NCBI GenBank assembly: GCA_950097015.1
Contig: CATNEN010000024.1
Location: forward strand, 4,588,001 to 4,652,000
Reading direction: 5' to 3'
From: Macrostomum hystrix
Taxonomy: Eukaryota; Animalia; Platyhelminthes
DNA: 64,000 nucleotides
The translations under genes were made by a program, and so were the position numbers. Below the pieces are notes generated by a model, which worked only from the letters and a program-made list of their open reading frames with translations, searched no databases and was not told the origin of the DNA. Shown here piece by piece: positions 5,593 through 64,000 of the stretch (position 1 is its first letter; every line of letters starts with the position of its first letter).

Positions 5593-7786
5593 TTGGGGTG
5601 GCGCAGAAGAGATTGGCGGCGCTTGCACTGGCACGCCGGTGGCTTTGATCTCCTTGCCCTGGCGCCGATCGCGAGAGCGTGAGTTCTGGAACCAAACTCT
5701 GACTACCTTCGGTGAGAGCCGCGTCACGGAGGCGATGCGCTGAAGGTCCATGGCAGTCGGCAGCGGATTGGACTGGTAGAACACCTTCAATGCGTCCACT
5801 TGGTCAGCGTGGATCACCGAGCGGGTCCGCTTCTCCCTGTCAGCGCTGCCTCCGCCTCCGCTGCTGCCAACGCCAACGATGCTTCGCTCACTGTCCATAA
5901 CAGCTTCTCCGTCGGGTTCATCGAAATCGGCGCCTACGCTGGCGCTGCCTCCACCCATCAAGTCGACGGTCGGCATGGCGACAACTGCGTTCGAGATTTC
6001 CGACTCATCACCCGGATAAACGCGATGAAAGTCGACTACGACGGGAAGGTCGGCCGCCGCGGATTTGGCGCCGCTGTCGCGCACAGTCTCCAGAATGCGC
6101 CTGATTGAGCTGAGGTCCTCGCCGCACGACGATGTGTCATCGTCCGGAGAGCGAATCCCGCAGTTCGCCGTCATCTCGTCCAGATTCGCCGGAATTAGCG
6201 GCGGCGGTGGTGGCGGCGGCAGGAGCATCGGCTGATGCAGCAGCTGCGGCTCCGGCTGCCGGTGAGTCAGCAGCGGCGGAGGCGGCGGCAGAACCATCGT
6301 CGGCGGCTCTGACTGCGCGATCCGCTCTCCAGCCTTGGTCGGGGAGAGGGCGGCGCACTTTTTGGAGGTCATGTGACTGCTGTAGGAGCCGCTGTGCGAG
6401 AACCGCTTGCCGCAGGACTGGCACATAAACGGCTTCTCGCCTGAGTGAATTCGCACGTGCTCCTTCAGGTGGTGCTTAAACTTGAACGCCTTGCCGCACT
6501 CCTGGCATTTGAACTTGCGCAGCTCGGAGCTCTCATTGTGACTAATTAGGTGGCGCTGGAGGCGGTAGATGTTGGCGAACATCTTGTTGCAGACGCCACA
6601 CTTTTGCGCATCCGGACTGTGCTCGGCGCTGTGCCGGTCCAAGTCGGTCTTGCTGGCGAAGGCGCCGCCGCACTCGATGCAGGCGAAGCGACCGTCGGCA
6701 TCGGCTTCGACGTCGATTTCAATGTTGTCGGTGTCGTCCGCTTCAGCAGATGGCTCCAGTGGGCTGGGTGCTGGAGCTGGGGAATTTTAGTGGAATTTTA
6801 CTTGAGTTTTATTCAGATTAAGAGAAACTTTTTTATCTACTTCAGGGGTCGGCAAACTTATTAGCAAGCGGACCAAAGAGAGATTCTAAAAGACGACAGC
6901 GGGCCGTATTGACAGTAGAAATCTGAGACACAGGAGAGATGAGAAACGGGAGAGATGAGAAACGGGAGAGATGAGACACGGGAGAGATGAGACACATGAG
7001 AGATAAGAGACGGAAGAGATGAGACATGGGAGAGATGAGACACGGAAAAGAGTAGACCGAGAGATGACACGGGATACTGTAGGTGGAAGGGGCAGCGGGC
7101 CGGATTTGGGAGCTTCGAGGGCCGCATCTGGCCCGCGGGTGCTCTTCTTCCTCTCTGAACCTTCTCTCCTCCTGATCCATCGATCCTCACCATCATCAGC
7201 AGAGTCGGTCTCCAGGTTGCGACTGTGGCCGTCAGCCTTCTCATCCAGCACAGCGGTCGATTCGTTTTCGTCGACATCCATGGCTGCTACGGGACGGGAA
7301 AGTTTATCAGCGCTTTTTAGATTTGAACAGATAGATGCGAATGACACCTAAGCGAGTTGGGCCAGATGTACAGCGGTTCGGTCCATGGACTGGGGGAAGC
7401 TGGCGCACTTACTCAAATATCTACCGAAGCTTATGCTGGTACCCATTTTACAGCTGTGTGAACTGAAGCAACGGGAATTTAAGGCTCTGGTTTAAGGACA
7501 CAAATTACTTCCTATCCTATGATCTGGGATACGAACCCACGACCTCTCGGTCGCAAGACTTGAAGCTCTAACCACTGGACTCGAATCTACCAGATTGCTA
7601 AATAGTGCATAACATGAAGAGCTTACCGTGGGCCAAATCGTGTGCTGGCGCAAGATTCTGATTCTCGTCCGGTTTCATCATCAGCTGCGGGCTGGCTTCG
7701 GGCACATCAACGTTCGGCATCTGTTCCTCCTCTCCAACTGCCGCTATGGGATTACCGTCAGTGTCTGCGAAGGAGAAGAAGTTCAT
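2610..7786 (-). CDS. zfh1: ZEB/Zfh1-family zinc-finger homeodomain transcriptional repressor, 5 coding exons, 837 aa
   Basis: Exons 7786-7627, 7286-7191, 6776-4873, 3400-3232, 2794-2610 all have GT/AG ends and compatible phases (1,1,0,1); 2514 nt in total. N-terminal cluster of 4 fingers ([62 protein letters not shown]); central homeodomain [21 protein letters not shown]; CtBP motifs PLDLR and VLDLC; C-terminal 3 fingers ([56 protein letters not shown]). This is the canonical ZEB architecture. Confidence 0.93.
2915..3148 (-). mobile_element. tRNA-derived SINE, family 1, in ZEB intron 4
   Basis: Minus strand begins ggggttagtgaccaagtggtctaacgcg (A box) and gagttcgattcc (B box); body matches the copy at 33431-33665. 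Confidence 0.85.
4873..6776 (-). CDS. zfh1: ZEB/Zfh1 large exon 3 (N-terminal zinc fingers, homeodomain, PLDL motifs)
   Basis: Acceptor ttccccag|ct at 6777/6776, donor ctc|gtgagt at 4873/4872; contains ORF 4861..6642 of the track. Confidence 0.95.
6843..7140 (-). mobile_element. hAT-type MITE, one end missing, in ZEB intron 2
   Basis: TIR caggggtcggcaaac at 6843, internal gagagatgagacacgg repeats, and subterminal ggcccgcgggccagatgcggccctcgaagctcccaaatccggccc shared with the intact copies; the last about 20 bp of the other TIR is absent. Confidence 0.85.
7341..7584 (-). mobile_element. tRNA-derived SINE, family 2, in ZEB intron 1
   Basis: Head tccagtggttagagc..ggttcgtatccc; central ttcagttcacacagctgtaaaatgggtacc block; 3' cccccagtccatgga..catctggcccaact shared with the copies at 16441 and 55690. 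Confidence 0.8.
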
Positions 7787-16665: not shown

Positions 16666-17132
16666 CAGGGGTCGGCAAACTCCGGCCCGCGGGCCAGATG
16701 CGGCCCTCGAAGCTCCCAAATCCGGCCCGTTGCCCCTTCTGACATCTACAGTGTCCTGTTTCATCTCTCTCGTGTCTAATCTCTCCTGTGTCTCATCGCT
16801 CTCGTGTCTAATCTCTCCCGTGTCTCATCTCTCCCGTTTCTAATCTCTCCTGTGTCTCATCGCTCTCGTGTCTCATCTCTCCTGTGTCTCATCTCTCCCC
16901 TGTCTTATATCTCCCGTGTCTTATCTCTCCCGTGTCTAATCTCTCTCGTGTCTAATCTCTCCCGTGTCTAATCTCTCCCGTGTCTAATCTCTCCCGTGTC
17001 TCATCTCTCCCGTGTCTAATCTCTCCCGTGTCTCATCTCTCCCCTATCTCATATTTATACAGTCAATGCGGCCCGCTGTCGTCTTTTAGGTTCTCTCTTT
17101 GGCCCGCCGGCAAATAAGTTTGCCTACCACTG
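16666..17132 (+). mobile_element. Intact non-autonomous hAT (Charlie-like) MITE, 467 bp
   Basis: TIRs caggggtcggcaaact ... aagtttgcctaccactg; perfect 8-bp TSD ctctaaag at 16658-16665 and 17133-17140; internal 16-bp repeats. Confidence 0.92.
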
Positions 17133-18849: not shown

Positions 18850-19480
18850 CTCCCCAACTGTCTCATCTCTCTTAAATCTTCTCTCTCCCCACCTTTCTCA
18901 TCTCTCATTAGTCTCCTCTCTCCCCACCTGTCTCATCTCTCATTAGTCTCCTCTCTCCACCTGTCTCATCTCTCATTAGTCTCCTCTCTCCCCACCTGTC
19001 TCATCTCTCATTAGTCTCCTCTCTCCCCCACCTGTCTCATCTCTCCACCTGTCTCATCTCTCCACCTGTCTCATCTCTCATTAGTCTCATCTCTCCACCT
19101 GTCTCATCTCTCATTAGTCTCCTCTCTCCACCTGTCTTATCTCTCATTAGTCTCCTCTCTCCACCTGTCTCACCTCTCATTAGTCTCATCTCTCCACCTG
19201 TCTCATCTCTCCACCTGTCTCATCTCTCCACCTGTCTCATCTCTCCACCTGTCTCATCTCTCATTAGTCTCCTCTCTCCACACCTGTCTCATCTCTCATT
19301 AGTCTTCTCTCTCCACCTGTCTCATCTCTCATTAGTCTCCTCTCTCCACCTGTCTCATCTCTCATTAGTCTCCTCTCTCCCCAATTGTCTCCTCTCACCC
19401 GTCCCCAGCGTTATCTCTCCTGACAATCCGTCCCGCTGTCGTCTTTAAGATTTGTCATTATTATTTTCTGGCAAAGTTTG
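18850..19480 (+). repeat. CT-rich 17/26-bp array related to the MITE 16-mer, ending in a decayed MITE right end
   Basis: Units tctcatctctccacctg and tctcattagtctcc; followed by cccgctgtcgtcttt..ggcaaagtttg, matching the MITE right arm. Confidence 0.7.
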
Positions 19481-21355: not shown

Positions 21356-22218
21356 CAGGGGTCGGCAAACTTATTAGCAAGCGGGCCAGAAAGAGAACCT
21401 GAAAGACGACAGTGGGCCTCAATTGACTGTAGAAATATAAGAGAAATATATCAGAGATGAGACACGGGAGAGATGAGGCACGGGACAGATGAGACACGGG
21501 AGAGATGAGACACGGCAGAGATGAGACACGGGAGAGATGAGACACGGGAGAGATGAGACACGGGAGAGATGAGACATGGGAGAGAAGTCACAAGGGAGAG
21601 GTGACACACGGGGGAGATGAGACATGGGACTCGGGAGAGATGACACACGGGAGAGAAGTTACAAGGGAGAGGTGACACACGGGGGAGATGAGACACGGGA
21701 GAGATGACACACGGGAGAGAAGTCACAAGGGAGAGGTGACACACGGGGGAGATGAGACACGGGAGAGATGAGACACGGGAGAGATGAGACACGGGAGAGA
21801 TGAGACATGGGAGAGAAGTCACAAGGGAGAGGTGACACACGGGAGAGATGACACACGGGAGAGATGACACACGGGAGAGATGACACACGGGAGAGATGAC
21901 ACACGGGAGAGATGACACACGGGAGAGATGACACACGGGAGAGATGACACACGGGAGAGATGACACACGGGAGAGATGACACACGGGAGAGATGACACAC
22001 GGGAGAGATGACACACGGGAGAGATGACACACGGGAGAGATGACACACGGGAGAGATGACACACGGGAGAGATGACACACGGGAGAGGTGACACACGGGG
22101 GAGATGAGACAGGGGAAAGATAAAACAGTATACTATGGGTGTCGGAAGGGGCAACGGGCCGTATTTGGGAGCTTTGACGGCCGCATCTGGCCCGCAGGCC
22201 GGAGTTTGCCGACCCCTG
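21356..22218 (-). mobile_element. Intact non-autonomous hAT MITE, 863 bp, with expanded 16-bp minisatellite
   Basis: TIRs caggggtcggcaaact ... agtttgccgacccctg; perfect 8-bp TSD ccttagct at 21348-21355 and 22219-22226. Confidence 0.93.
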
Positions 22219-55999: not shown

Positions 56000-56674
56000 T
56001 TAGTATAAGTGACTAGCTTAGGTGACTAGGCTAAAACCTCTTGGTTGTAGCCTAGTCACCTTGATCTATAAACTGTTCTAACCATTGTTCTAAAAAGTGT
56101 TATAAATTGTTTTCATGAAAAACATTTTCATATTTTTCCTAAACCGCTCTAAAACGAATCTAATTCTGCTAAAAATGAGTTTCAAAATTTTTCTAGAAAT
56201 TATTCTAAAGTCTGTTTTTTTATTTCCGTTCAAGCTGCCATTTTAAGCCAAAGTTCCTTATAAAACTCTAGTCTATTTAGCAAATACCTGAAAAAAAAAC
56301 ATTAGTGCATGCATTCCGCCAAAAAACAAATAACTATTTTTTCAAAGTATGCTTTGCTTCTTTGCTAGAAACACAAACAGGTAACCACTTTTCATTCACC
56401 AATTATTTAAAAAAATCATTTTCTAGTAAGTCGCTCTTTCAGTAACATTTAAAAAGAAAATAAAAGATAATTAAATTCCCGTAGCCAATAGCAAATTCTT
56501 CAATAGTCACATTATAACCTCATTTGTTCAGGCAGTTATCATCCTTGTCAACTGCAAAAGGCACAGAGATTAAAGTACAAAGAGTTTTAATAGTGAAATC
56601 ACCAAAAACAAGAGTTGCTATAGCACAGCTGCTCCTTGATCAAAGAGGCTGAGAATAGACTCAAATTGACTCAC

Positions 56675-59600
56675 CTTACACTCGCTAACAGCTGCCGAAT
56701 AATGATTAGCCAGCTGGTGATGATGCTGATGACTCTGGAAACTGGAAACTGGAACGCCGGGCGAGGCGTCCGGCTGATGAAGCTGATGGTGGTGATGATG
56801 ATGCTGAACGGAGCTGCTGCTGCCGCTGGGGCCGCCAGCTGCGGCAACGGCTACAGCGGCTGCAGCCGCCATGCCCATCGGATCAGCCGGATGATGATGC
56901 TGATGAAGGCCTACGCCGCCGCCACCGAGACGGACAGGAATTTCGTCGCTTTTCTCCTCTTCCCGACGCTTCAAACAGGCCGCTTTGGGATTCAGATTGC
57001 GCTCTGGAGTTGTTCGGGTTTGGAACCGGTAATCCCCTCTAATAACTAACTGGCTTCTCTCATATTTTGGAGGCAAACTGTTCTACTGAGTTAGTAGTAC
57101 CACGAAGAAATGAGCACAGCAAATTGCAATCAGGTTAAAAAATGCATTCGTCTAGACAAGGCGGTGGCCCAGGCCAACGAGGGATAAAAGAGAAAAATTG
57201 CGGGCCATATGAAGGGAGGAGAGATGAGACATGGAAGAGATGAGACACGGGACAGATGAGACACGGGACAGATGAGACACGGGAGAGATGAGACACAGAA
57301 GGAGATGAGACACGGGAGGTATGAGACACGGGAGAGTTGAGGCACGGGACAGATGAGACACGGGAGAGATAAGACACGGGACATATAAGACACGGGAGAG
57401 ATAAGACACGGGACAGATGAGACATGGGTGAGATGAGACACGGGAGAGATGAGACACGGGAGAGATGAGGCACGGGAGAGATGAGACATGGGAGAGATAA
57501 GACACGGGAGAGACGAGACACGGTAGAGATGAGGCATGGGAGAGATAAGACACGGGAGAGATGAGACACGGGAGAGATGAGACACGGGAGAGATGAGACA
57601 CGGGAGAGATGAGACACGGGAGAGATGAGACACGGGACAGATGAGACACGGGAGAGATGAGACACGAGAGAGATGAGACACGGGAGATGAGACACGGGAG
57701 AGATGAGACACGGGAGAGATGAGACACGGGAGAGATGAGACACGGGAGAGATGACACACGGGAGAGATGAGACACGGGAGAGATGAGACATGGGAGAGAT
57801 GAGACACGGGAGAGATGAGACACGGGAGAGATGACACACGGGAGAGATGAGACACGGGAGAGATGAGACACGGGAGAGATGAGACACGGGAGAGATGACA
57901 CATGGGAGAGATGAGACACGGGAGAGATGAGATACGGGAGAGATAAGACACGGGAGAGATGAGACACGGGAGAGATGAGACACGGGAGAGATGAGACACG
58001 GGAGAGATGAGACACGGGAGAGATGAGACACGGGAGAGATGAGACACGGGAGAGATGAGACACGGGAGAGATGAGACACGGGAGAGATGAGACGCGGGAG
58101 AGATGAGTTAGAGAGATGATTGGCAGTCATTACCTCGAACTTGCTGCTCCAAGGCGGTGATGACTGTGACAGCCTGCTGAAGCACGCCGAGTTTTGTCTG
58201 CGGCTTTTCATTTTTCAGGTGCATCATTGTCATGCGGCCCAGCTCCTTGAAGGCGCCATTGATGTCGCGAACGCGAACTCTGGGCGATGATTAGGTCAAA
58301 AGAAACATGCGAATTGAGGCGTGCTTTTGCATGACGTGCATTCATTAAACACTTCACACCGGCAAAAACATTTGCCTTAAATTTGGGTTAAAGTTTATTG
58401 AAATGAATTCATAAGGCGAAGATTCGCAAACTATATATTAGCAGTTCAATCTCTTTCCTAAATAATTTCTTTGTCTCCTTAGAAACGAGGCGGTCATAAT
58501 TGCTTTCCAGTATTTTTCGCACCTGGAAAATTCTTTTTAATCCTCACAAGCTTTCCGTGCAACAACCATTCCTGGATAGGTGCTTGAGAATAATTGCTCA
58601 ATTTTCTAGCTGAAAACAATCAAATGCAGACTGAATTGTTGTCGCCTTTGTGGAAAATTGTCAGCCCAATTAGCAATAGGCTCTTTGACTAGCAATCGAC
58701 TATGGACTGAAGTGGTTCGAAAACTTTCTTTTTGGACCAGTGAAACACCAGTCTGCTTGAAGAACACAGATAACTTTAACTTGAGTAGCCTATTCTCTCC
58801 CGTCTCAATATTCGGGGCTTCTAGCCGATGTCAACGAAAGTGGGAATGGGTATTGTCGGTGAAAAAATATTTCCTCACATTGCTCGCTTATCCAGGCAGG
58901 GAATAATTGGGGTGGGTTAGCAGCGAAACATCTGGCGCAACTCCCTGAGCAGGTTTTGTCGTCGGAACCCCAAAACACGGCCAAAATCGGGTTCAGTTTG
59001 AGAAGAATTGGCTTCAATTGCAAAAAAATGCAACACTATAGGATTTTCGTGCATTGAAATTTACGCAAATTTTCCTATTTGGTTTGGTTCGTTAGCTTGA
59101 CTATGCAGTTAGATAAGTGCACCGATTTTTAATTTCGAAAATTAGTCAACCTTCAGTTTCATATTTTAAACCACTCACAATCCACAGCCTGCACAATACA
59201 TAGGCTGTACAATACCCAGGCTGCACAATCCACAGCCTGCACAATCCACAGCCTGCACAATCCACAGCCTGCACAATCCACAGCCTGCACAATACACAGC
59301 CTGCACAATCCACAGCCTGTACAATACACAGCCTGCACAATCCACAGCCTGCACAATCCACAGCCTGCACAATACACAGGCTGTACAATACCCAGGCTGC
59401 ACAATCCACAGCCTGCACAATCCACAGCCTGCACAATACACAGCCTGCACAATACACAGCCTGCACAATACACAGCCTGCACAATACACAGCCTGCACAA
59501 TACACAGCCTGCACAATACACAGCCTGAATTATCGAAAGTTCACAACCTATGCAATGAATAATCAAAAACATTCACACCTCACAACCTTCAAAATCCACA

Positions 59601-62023
59601 AATTTCACAATCCGAAACCTGCAAGATCAACAATTTGAGATTAGATACCGGAGAGATGAGATACAGGAGAGATGAGATGCAGGAGAGATGAGACAAGGCA
59701 GAGATGTGACAGGGAGAGATGAGACAGGGGAGAGATGAGACAGGGAGAGATGAGACAGGGAGAGATGAGACAGGGAGAGATGAGACAGGGGAGAGATGAG
59801 ACAGGGGAGAGATGAGACAGGGAGAGATGAGACAGGGCGAGATGAGACAGGGAGAGATGAAACAGGGAGAGATGAGACAGGGAGAGATGAGACAGGGGAG
59901 AGATGAGACAGGGGAGAGATAAGACAGGGGACAGATGAGACAGGGGAGAGATGAGACAGGGGACAGATGAGACAGGGGAGAGATGAGACAGGGGACAGAT
60001 GAGACAGGGCGAGATGAGACAGGGAGAGATGAAACAGGGAGAGATGAGACAGGGAGAGATGAGACAGGGGAGAGATGAGACAGGGGAGAGATAAGACAGG
60101 GGACAGATGAGACAGGGAGAGATGAGACAGGGGAGAGATGAGACAGGGGAGAGATGAGACAGGGGAGAGATGAGACAGGGAGAGATGAGACAGGGGAGAG
60201 ATGAAACAGGGAGAGATGAGACAGGGCGAGATGAGACAGGGAGAGATGAGACAAGGAGAGATGAGACAGGGGAGAGATGAAACAGGGAGAGATGAGACAG
60301 GGAGAGATGAGACAGGGAGAGATGAAACAGGGAGAGATGAGACAGGGGAGAGATGAGACAGGGGAGAGATAAGACAGGGGACAGATGAGACAGGGGAGAG
60401 ATGAGACAGGGGAGAGATGAGACAGGGAGAGATGAGACAGGGAGGGTTTCGCTTCACAAACCAATCAATTTTATGTGACACTTGGAGATTTTAGCTCGTA
60501 AATAGCACTCTGGGATTGAACGGAAATTCTCCATGCTGCCCATGCTTCATAGCCCACGGCAATGCAAGCTCTCATTCTGCCCAATGGCACTTGTCTTGAG
60601 AATTCACAGTCACCTCTAACTTGCTGCTCCAGGGTGGTGATTATCCCCACCGCCTGCTGCAGCACCATCAGCTTGGTGAGGGGCTGGCTGTTTCCCGTGT
60701 GCATGTCCACCATTTGCCCGAGCTCCTTGAAGGCATCGTTGATGTCTTTCACTCGCAGTCTGTGCGAGACGACATCAAAGCAGTGAAGCTAAGTTTTATA
60801 GAATATAACTGAACTGATTCCATTGGTCAAAGAGCTAGGCACGTGCGAGTTAAAATATATTTTTTCAATGGCAGGGAACGAAAAATACGACCTCAAATGA
60901 TCCTTCCTCGAAAATACCCCGATCCTCAAACTTTACTCCCACCTCCAGTAATCCCAAATTTGAATCCGTATCTCCAGCAATCCCAAACTTGAATTCCACC
61001 TCCAGTAATCCCAAACTTGAATTCCAACTCCAGTAATCCCAAATTTGAATCCGTACCTCCAGTAATCCCAAACTTGAATTCCAACTCCAGTAATCCCAAA
61101 TTTGAATCCGTACCTCCAGTAATCCCAAACTTGAATTCCAACTCCAGTAATCCCAAACTTGAATTCCAACTCCAGTAATCCCAAACTTGAATTCCAACTC
61201 CAGTAATCCCAAACTTGAATTCCACCTCCAGTAATCCCAAATTTGAATCGGTACCTCCAGCAATCCCAAACTTGAATTCCAACTCCAGTAATCCCAAACT
61301 TGAATCCCAAGACCACTAATCCCGTCCATGAATCCCACATCAAGTTATCCTAGCTATAAATGCTACCACCAGAAAATCCTACCTTAATTTAATTCTACTT
61401 CCAATCAACCCCACCCAAAGAACCATGCCCTAAATAATTCTAAATAAGAAATCGGCCTCTAAAACTCCTTCTCCAAAAGATAAAATCCCAAAATTCTCCC
61501 TCCCGACATTGCTGGCAGGCTCCGCTCACCTCTCCCTGGCATTGTTGGCGTATCGCCTGGCCTTCTCCCTCTGCTGTTTCTCCTCCGGGCTCAGCTCGAA
61601 CTCGTCGTCGTCGTCGTCGCTAATTGACGTCGCGGCGCTGCTCGGCCCGGCTCGGCGCTTCAAAGCCTGCCCGCTCTTGTCCGATGACGAGGAGGCGGCG
61701 CCTCCCAGGGCGGACATGCCGGACAGCGCGTGCAGCTGCTGCTGGACCATCGCCAGACTCTTGGCCGATATGCCGCCGATGCTGGCGCCGTCGAATTCAT
61801 CCATGCCTGAGGTTGGCGACACCTGCGAAGGTGCGGGAGCGTGCTGCTGCAGCTGCTTGATCGACGGTTTGGCTTGGCTGCGGCTGCCGCCGGCACCTCC
61901 GGCTCCGTCCTGCAGAATCGGCGGAGTCGGTAAAAGATGCTGCTGCTGCTGCGGCAGCGCAGGCTGATGATGCTGCTGCGGTTGGCCCGAAATTGCGGCG
62001 GAATGCGAAATTGGGCAGGCGGA
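56675..62023 (-). CDS. da: E-protein (class I bHLH; daughterless/TCF3/TCF4/TCF12 family), 3' part; 5' exons not identified in the window
   Basis: Exon 62023-61530 ends [19 protein letters not shown] (phase 2); HLH exon 60759-60614 or 58279-58134; exon 57003-56675 begins [18 protein letters not shown], diagnostic for E proteins; all junctions GT/AG and in phase. Confidence 0.93.
57220..58110. repeat. 16-bp minisatellite (gagagatgagacacgg), same unit as the MITE interior
   Basis: About 55 copies in the intron after HLH exon B. Confidence 0.95.
58134..58279 (-). CDS. da: E-protein HLH exon B (mutually exclusive)
   Basis: cgcccag|a..gttcgag|gtaatg; 146 nt; [48 protein letters not shown]. Absent from the ORF track. 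Confidence 0.9.
59175..59530. repeat. 16-bp minisatellite (cagcctgcacaatcca)
   Basis: About 22 copies. Confidence 0.93.
59645..60445. repeat. 15/16-bp minisatellite (gagagatgagacaggg[g])
   Basis: In the intron after HLH exon A; one-base variant of the MITE 16-mer. Confidence 0.95.
60614..60759 (-). CDS. da: E-protein HLH exon A (mutually exclusive)
   Basis: cgcacag|a..gttagag|gtgact; 146 nt; [48 protein letters not shown]. Confidence 0.9.
60935..61310. repeat. 28/30-bp minisatellite (ctccagtaatcccaaacttgaattccaa)
   Basis: About 13 copies. Confidence 0.92.
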
Positions 62024-62746: not shown

Positions 62747-64000
62747 TTGATAAGGATTCTGATACAGGCATTGATAAGGGTTCTGATACAGGCATTGATA
62801 AGGATTCTGATACAGGCATTGATAAGGATTCTGATACAGGCATTGATAAGGGTTCTGATACAGGCATTGATAAGGATTCTGATACAGGCATTGATAAGGA
62901 TTCTGATACAGGCATTGATAAGGATTCTGATACAGGCATTGATAAGGGTTCTGATACAGGCATTGATAAGGATTCTGATACAGGCATTGATAAGGATTCT
63001 GATACAGGCATTGATAAGGATTCTGATACAGGCATTGATAAGGGTTCTGATACAGGCATTGATAAGGATTCTGATACAGGCATTGATAAGGATTCTGATA
63101 CAGGCATTGATAAGGATTCTGATACAGGCATTGATAAGGATTCTGATACAGGCATTGATAAGGATTCTGATACAGGCATTGATAAGGATTCTGATACAGG
63201 CATTGATAAGGATTCTGATACAGGCATTGATAAGGATTCTGATACAGGCATTGATAAGGATTCTGAGACAGGCATTGATAAGGGTTCTGATACAGGCATT
63301 GATAAGGATTCTGATACAGGCATTGATAAGGATTCTGATGCAGGCATTGATAAGGATTCTGATACAGGCATTGATAAGGATTCTGATACAGGCATTGATA
63401 AGGATTCTGATACAGGCATTGATAAGGATTCTGATACAGGCATTGATAAGGATTCTGATACAGGCATTGATAAGGATTCTGATACAGGCATTGATAAGGA
63501 TTCTGATACAGGCATTGATAAGGATTCTGATACAGGCATTGATAAGGATTCTGATCTTTCCTGTTAATTAGGAAATTAACAGGCATTGATAAGGATTCTG
63601 ATACAGGCATTGATAAGGATTCTGATACAGGCATTGATAAGGATTCTGATACAGGCATTGATAAGGATTCTGATACAGGCATTGATAAGGGTTCTGATAC
63701 AGGCATTGATAAGGGTTCTGATACAGGCATTGATAAAGATTCTGATACAGGCATTGATAAGGATTCTGATACAGGCATTGATAAGGATTCTGATACAGGC
63801 ATTGATAAGGATTCTGATACAGGCATTGATAAGGATTCTGATACAGGCATTGATAAGGATTCTGATACAGGCCTTGATAAGGATTCTGATACAGGCCTTG
63901 ATAAGGATTCTGATACAGGCATTGATAAGGATTCTGATACAGGCATTGATAAGGATTCTGATACAGGCATTGATAAGGATTCTGATACAGGCATTGATAA
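62747..64000. repeat. 24-bp minisatellite (gatacaggcattgataaggattct), runs off the window end
   Basis: About 50 copies with one interruption at about 63553-63580. Confidence 0.96.

Follow-up and report, generated by a model that had tools for sequence, protein, structure and literature searches.

The 64,000-nucleotide (nt) stretch of the Macrostomum hystrix genome considered here (assembly GCA_950097015.1, contig CATNEN010000024.1, positions 4,588,001 to 4,652,000 of the forward strand; hereafter, the window) contains part of a gene in which two tandem helix-loop-helix (HLH) exons, A and B, lie between one exon for the basic region and one downstream exon, the ERNLNPK exon. Judging from their sequences, A and B are almost certainly real alternative exons. 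The pair appears to be old and widespread, being found in flatworms including tapeworms, with tandem HLH exons also in oysters and small crustaceans, rather than a one-off copy of the E12/E47 switch of vertebrates. The explanation that we consider probable as a whole is that the locus is the 3′ part of a single-locus class I basic HLH (bHLH) gene of a Macrostomum-type flatworm, i.e., an E-protein gene of the daughterless or TCF4/12-like kind, that each of its mRNAs takes one of the two HLH exons, that the A/B pair predates the split between Macrostomorpha and Neodermata, and that the A type is common to molluscs and annelids.

The visible gene lies on the minus strand, and its upstream exons, in which the N-terminal activation domains (AD1, AD2/LH) of an E-protein would be expected, are located beyond the window end at 64000. 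Its exons, in order, are the following.

61530..62023, minus strand: basic-region exon, ending ..AAT GCC AGG GAG AG, donor GTGAGC.
60614..60759, minus strand: HLH exon A, 146 nt, 'QPLTKLM' type, net charge 0.
58134..58279, minus strand: HLH exon B, 146 nt, canonical 'ELGRM..HLK.EKPQTKL' type, net charge +4.
56621..57003, minus strand: common downstream ERNLNPK exon, acceptor ..CTCCAG followed by AGCGCAAT, open to a TAG stop at 56620-56618.

The E-protein basic region R-R-x-A-N-N-A-R-E-R, the core of which reads RRYANNARE, is found at 61585-61529, directly before helix 1; the basic-region exon itself encodes, at its 3′ end, NNARE and the first two bases of an Arg codon. The 5′ end of this exon would be at 62023, judging from the acceptor ..TTGTTCCAG at 62025-62024. 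Exon A follows an acceptor ..CACAG, begins with ACTGCG, and ends with TTAGAG before the donor GTGACT; exon B follows ..CCCAG, begins with AGTTCG, and ends with TTCGAG before GTAATG. Both exons run from phase 2 to phase 1, and the HLH frame is the only one open in each. Every structural statement of the initial annotation, which had described two 146-nt AG/GT exons of these phases between the NNARER and ERNLNPK exons, was confirmed by reading the minus strand across 56800-61800 and by script. The two exons are identical at 33 of 48 amino acids and at 97 of 146 nucleotides; 15 codons differ only synonymously and 15 non-synonymously. Each matches the Pfam HLH family (PF00010; E 2e-8 for A and 9e-7 for B), and the best PDB matches of both are TCF4 and E2A, with 56.8 bits (E 5e-15) for exon A and 64.7 bits (E 2e-17) for exon B, which is the more canonical HLH copy. 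A tblastn search of both peptides against the whole window matched only A and B and revealed no third, decayed HLH copy. The conserved E-protein extension after helix 2 is identical at 18 of 18 residues (57004-56951). A consensus donor (AAG/GTGAGT at 56675/56674) was also seen within the open reading frame of the ERNLNPK exon, 55 nt ahead of the stop, and the true C-terminus of the protein may be encoded further downstream, past this donor.

The reading frame constrains how these exons can be combined. The prediction that joint inclusion would break the frame is borne out by script translation, in which A joined to B shifts the frame and runs into stops; the frame is likewise lost when both exons are skipped, 146 being indivisible by 3. 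In the mechanism that we propose, each mRNA would carry one HLH exon, either A or B, the choice being enforced by the frame, while transcripts with both or neither would meet early stops and presumably be removed by nonsense-mediated decay. For this species, alternative use is what we infer, the support being indirect and coming from isoforms and gene models of relatives.

The same pair is present in other flatworms. The closest proteins are UniProt entries of Macrostomum lignano, which we take to indicate another species of Macrostomum or a diverged homeologue. Exon A is identical to M. lignano exon A at 47 of 48 amino acids, and exon B to M. lignano exon B at 46 of 46. One M. lignano gene model (A0A1I8JSA8, P0003) reads A and then B within one protein, another (A0A1I8JQI8) joins NNARER to A, and a third (A0A1I8IPN2) joins B to ERNLNPK. 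A is followed by B in models from Taenia solium, Echinococcus granulosus, Schistocephalus solidus, and Cichlidogyrus casuarinus, and the A type is present in models from Protopolystoma, Hydatigera, T. asiatica, and Schistosoma rodhaini. Models from S. rodhaini join A to NNARER, and those from Heterobilharzia have B spliced on both sides. In cestode DNA (T. solium L005, E. granulosus L008, S. solidus L009), A again precedes B, each exactly 146 nt long with AG/GT borders, and the introns at the HLH pair measure 123-152 nt (126 nt for the A-B intron of T. solium).

T. solium L005, 9659-9804 and 9931-10076: the two HLH exons, by DNA check.

Among flatworm exons, identities are 75-79% for A-A, 69-81% for B-B, and 60-71% for A-B comparisons; the window exons fall at 75-79% (A) and 69-81% (B) against their neodermatan counterparts. 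Orthologous exons are more alike than paralogous ones. The initial annotation had taken the pair for an independent duplication in a single invertebrate, a view that does not survive the presence of the same A/B pair in M. lignano and cestodes, and of A- or B-type exons in monogenean and schistosome models. The search of relatives for loss of one copy, which it had suggested, found both copies kept in M. lignano and three cestodes. A second M. lignano E-protein locus (P0023, A0A1I8FSE8) has an A-like copy, the loop of which is longer (..HSELDSGSQQPPLTKL..), followed by a B-like one; this locus carries both types, and therefore the A/B pair was duplicated as a whole in the M. lignano lineage.

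Selection was assessed from the three cestode loci, with the following synonymous/non-synonymous counts.

T. solium versus E. granulosus: exon A 7/0, exon B 2/2.
Taeniids versus Schistocephalus: exon A 27/3-4, exon B 22/8-9.

Both exons are under strong purifying selection in cestodes, and the constraint is tighter on A than on B. When the window is compared with M. lignano, the flanking basic-region exon is 70% identical (85 of 121 amino acids, with gaps, against P0003), versus 98% for exon A and 100% for exon B. Identity in the flanking exon has fallen by 30%, with A and B almost unaltered; therefore, neither is a dead exon. These cestode counts and the near-identity to M. lignano uphold the earlier claim that both exons are under selection. 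Between A and B themselves, the values from a simple Nei-Gojobori count are 0.67 at synonymous sites (pS, saturated) and 0.24 at non-synonymous sites (pN).

In a maximum-likelihood tree of the exon peptides, window A groups with M. lignano A (100/94), flatworm A exons are monophyletic (96/79), and flatworm A joins all mollusc exons (100/96). Window B groups with the Macrostomum B exons (99/93), placed among canonical arthropod and vertebrate exons in a part of the tree without resolution. Copy 1 of the two ostracods forms a pair (95/82) with no resolved relation to the flatworm pair. The vertebrate E12, E47, and TCF4 exons form a clade of their own (94/89), apart from A and B. The approximately unbiased (AU) test rejects trees in which all flatworm exons are forced together, as in a flatworm-only duplication (p=0.002), and trees in which all Macrostomum exons are forced together, as in a Macrostomum-only duplication (p=0.016).

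Outside flatworms, mollusc TCF4/12-like genes have an identical architecture, in which a basic exon ending ..NNARE-AG is followed by two or three 146-nt HLH exons and then by the ERNLNPK exon. The oyster genomic contig L001 has a basic exon ending ..NNARE AG before a GT donor and then three 146-nt HLH exons, and the Pinctada locus L007 has three HLH exons before its ERNLNPK exon. Unlike in flatworms, all mollusc copies are of A type, and no B-type exon was found between the basic and ERNLNPK exons of L007, the one mollusc locus searched. The third Pinctada imbricata copy (L007:42213-42357) has a one-base frame break after 15 codons and is either a decaying copy or an assembly error. Alternative use is visible in deposited sequences: oyster RefSeq isoforms and the cDNA-like Logan contig P0005 use different HLH copies, and isoforms P0076 and P0187 of the Sinanodonta woodiana locus tag ACJMK2_026725 carry one or the other of two HLH exons. 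Moreover, mollusc A-type exons are spliced to ERNLNPK (P0005 and RefSeq isoforms). The annelids Dimorphilus and Ridgeia have an A-type HLH, A being the only HLH type seen among the molluscs and annelids sampled; the HLH of a bdelloid rotifer is B-like. Among crustaceans, the ostracod Darwinula (L006) has two tandem 146-nt HLH exons with AG/GT borders, and HLH segments likewise stand in tandem pairs in the ostracod Cyprideis and the amphipod Hyalella. These daughterless orthologues resemble the flatworm gene in having a tandem pair and differ from it in that both copies are B-like, the downstream copy being the classical da-type exon.

The simplest reading of these sequences is that B represents the ancestral bilaterian state and that A arose by exon duplication before the flatworm lineage split from that of molluscs and annelids. 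Flatworms would then have kept both exons and the sampled trochozoans only A, which bivalves would have duplicated again; the bivalve copies do look like later duplications within the A lineage.

Comparison with vertebrate TCF3/E2A places the flatworm pair in context. In both systems, an E-protein gene has two tandem homologous HLH exons with the same 3′ boundary (..QQVR before ERNLNPK, phase 1). Use of one exon per mRNA, predicted for the flatworm gene, yields in vertebrates the E12 and E47 isoforms, which differ in DNA-binding and dimerisation behaviour (PMC6795145, PMC6120717, PMC6317319). In vertebrates, however, an acidic segment and the entire basic region are included in each copy (gene models P0024 and P0025), whereas the flatworm unit starts after NNARE, exactly the difference in boundary noted by the initial annotation; furthermore, both vertebrate copies are of the canonical B type. 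A and B do not group one-to-one with E12 and E47, and the flatworm pair is not the orthologue of the vertebrate pair. The flatworm and vertebrate origins are separate because the vertebrate exons have their own clade and the vertebrate unit is larger, so that the resemblance was rightly described as convergent. The supposed echo of E12 and E47 in the opening LRV.. and VRV.. residues is uninformative, since the residue at the first position may be L, V, I, or M, depending on the copy. A mutually exclusive pattern has also been reported for daughterless of Bicyclus anynana, involving two previously unannotated exons upstream of a common exon; unlike for the flatworm pair, the paper does not say that these exons encode the HLH (PMC9218548).

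How the two proteins might differ is suggested by the location of the substitutions. The duplicated exon covers the last basic-region residues, helix 1, the loop, and helix 2. The flatworm A and B sets share no residue at ten positions (1, 15, 17, 18, 21, 22, 24, 25, 27, and 31), which lie from the last part of helix 1 through the loop to the beginning of helix 2. The two predicted isoforms would have a common N-terminus, core basic region RRYANNARE, and C-terminal tail, and would differ in the HLH exon, isoform B having the canonical positively charged loop (+4) and isoform A an uncharged one (net 0). Residues of the bHLH loop and helix 2 start, as well as bHLH positions 12-14 and 17, contact the DNA backbone (PMC8431614), and these positions fall inside the duplicated exon. 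E12 and E47 differ in DNA binding (PMC6317319). The flatworm isoforms may thus differ in DNA backbone contacts and DNA affinity, in partner choice, or in both; isoform A, given its uncharged loop, would be predicted to have weaker DNA binding as a homodimer or to favour other partners.

Several points weigh against the picture of an ancient pair of alternative exons with distinct functions. The tree comprises 43 exon peptides and 48 columns and has limited resolution, and the groups given to the AU test were named after the tree had been seen. A search for RNA runs with the whole 5.5-kb stretch, which is mostly intron and minisatellite and probably masked true RNA runs, returned two small-share runs of unclear type, and their reads gave zero contigs on exon A and its flanks. 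A clean join of exon A to ERNLNPK was not seen among flatworm gene models; some of these read through the A donor into the intron (P0054, P0201, P0202), and others fuse A and B (P0003, P0197, P0198, P0028). Across species, exon A donors (GTGACT, GTGGTG, GTAATC) are weaker than exon B donors. Finally, the functional difference between the isoforms is one that we infer. With regard to the fused models, UniProt and GenBank hold many E-protein models from flatworms, bivalves, and crustaceans in which two or three alternative HLH exons are fused, often with intron read-through (P0003, P0196, P0197, P0198, P0200, P0028, P0035, P0037, P0052), and the old oyster model K1QGM5 fuses all three HLH copies; these are mis-annotations.

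The chief rival explanation, which we consider unlikely, is that exon A is a terminal alternative exon, its transcripts ending in the A-B intron and yielding a truncated E-protein that has the HLH and lacks the ERNLNPK tail and C-terminus. The open reading frame does continue for 45 codons beyond exon A (60471-60752), the read-through flatworm models just mentioned stop shortly after A, within the intron, and weak A donors would fit such an arrangement. However, the 146-nt length, final G, and GT donor of exon A are kept in every species checked, and these features would matter only if A were joined in frame to the following exon. Molluscs of the same architecture do splice A-type exons to ERNLNPK, and the intron read-through peptides are not conserved across species.

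In our opinion, it is very improbable that the duplication left an unused relic, most likely the divergent exon A, and that the protein is made from canonical B only. The higher score of B against TCF4/E2A (64.7 versus 56.8 bits) and the zero contigs on exon A in the two small-share RNA runs agree with such a view. Set against it are the open frame, constant length, and intact splice sites of A from Macrostomum to tapeworms, the cestode counts of 27 synonymous versus 3-4 non-synonymous changes, which make A more constrained than B, the 47 of 48 residues shared with M. lignano A versus 70% identity in the neighbouring exon, and the standing of A as the only HLH type in sampled molluscs and annelids.

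Still less credible, in our view, is the reading that a recent duplication, confined to the lineage of this invertebrate, converged on E12/E47. Its claim to independence from vertebrates holds, given that the duplicated unit differs from the vertebrate one and that the vertebrate exons form their own clade. Yet the same pair is found in other flatworm orders, both Macrostomum-only and flatworm-only origins are rejected by the AU test, and synonymous sites between A and B are saturated. An assembly artefact, i.e., two paralogous loci wrongly joined, can practically be dismissed: M. lignano does have a second E-protein locus, and the introns here are full of hard-to-assemble minisatellites, but the basic-A-B-tail order recurs in independent assemblies of at least five species, with cestode introns of only 123-152 nt, and the M. 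lignano paralogue P0023 itself carries both types.

The introns of the locus are occupied largely by repeats.

60760..61529, minus strand: intron between the basic-region exon and exon A, with a minisatellite of ~28 nt (unit GGAATTCAAGTTTGGGATTACTGGAGTT) at about 60950-61330.
58280..60613, minus strand: intron between exon A and exon B, 2334 nt.
57004..58133, minus strand: intron between exon B and the ERNLNPK exon, nearly all a CT-rich 16-nt minisatellite (57217-58107).

The A-B intron contains a CT-rich minisatellite of 15-16 nt (about 59649-60436) and another of ~20 nt (unit GCAGGCTGTGTATTGT.., about 59200-59530). The core of the CT-rich minisatellite, CTCATCTCTCCC, has 163 matches in the window versus 0.6 expected, and the repeat recurs on both strands at 6932-7039, 16808-17043, 18913-19381, and 21466-22108. 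It would give rise to long pyrimidine tracts in the pre-mRNA after both HLH exons. The idea that this minisatellite is part of the duplicated unit or a splicing signal was dropped, since it is a dispersed repeat that occurs elsewhere in the window. Only three inverted repeats, all weak, were found, and the z values for RNA folding around the two HLH acceptors were -0.29 and -0.19. Exclusivity enforced by a docking/selector or hairpin mechanism has no support.

Other variants of the bHLH region were seen in more distant genes. Most of the Haliotis RefSeq isoforms (P0211-P0217) carry 20 additional residues (YVASKTTPLVKAALNNARER) that separate ..NNARER from the HLH exon; this segment looks like a small cassette exon in which the end of the basic region recurs with a much lower content of basic residues. 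The otherwise invariant Ala of NNARER varies in molluscs and annelids, being replaced by N, C, Q, V, D, or T (P0045, P0050, P0077, P0089, P0205, P0224), and isoforms of one gene of the chiton Liolophura (P0184, P0185 versus P0072, P0177-P0183) differ in this respect, with NNARER versus NNNRER. This variation suggests that the basic-region exon, too, may exist in alternative copies in molluscs and annelids. In a 1037-residue 'transcription factor 12' model of the tardigrade Hypsibius exemplaris (P0100), two entire bHLH domains of divergent sequence are separated by about 270 residues, and a separate basic region and tail accompany each of them; this arrangement differs from that of the flatworm exon pair.

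As to novelty, no paper in the literature searched describes a switch between HLH exons for an E-protein gene of an invertebrate. The initial annotation, which had considered it undescribed for invertebrate daughterless, is borne out as regards published papers, but alternative HLH exons are already visible in mollusc GenBank and RefSeq isoforms. A survey of lophotrochozoan bHLH genes lists one E12/E47 gene per mollusc with splicing unmentioned (PMC5381572), and daughterless/HLH-2-type genes are regarded in reviews and in studies of invertebrates as providing a single protein in each genome (PMC6317319, PMC10108603). To the broadest interpretation of our results we would assign an even chance. 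According to it, the 'single E-protein' of protostomes is often not single: a duplication before the flatworm-mollusc/annelid split would have created an A exon with an uncharged loop beside canonical B, in flatworms both would have persisted as a switch for over half a billion years, trochozoans would have kept only A, which bivalves re-duplicated, and crustaceans and vertebrates would have built pairs of their own. Such pairs would then represent a recurrent, selected solution not described in the literature searched.

The significance of the exon pair derives from its age and breadth more than from a single locus. E-proteins are the obligate partners of tissue-specific bHLH factors, including proneural and myogenic factors, Twist, and Hand. 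If two or three E-proteins that differ in the surfaces of helix 1, the loop, and helix 2 are produced in each of flatworms, bivalves, and crustaceans, splicing could determine both the choice of partner and the affinity for DNA, RNA interference or in situ probes directed to common exons would average over isoforms, and gene models that fuse HLH copies would be wrong. Macrostomum is a transgenic regeneration model, which makes isoform-specific tests practical. The repeated and independent origin of such exons, in vertebrate TCF3, the flatworm A/B pair, the bivalve triplication, and the crustacean pairs, would represent a clear example of convergence through exon duplication, affecting the same protein interface each time.

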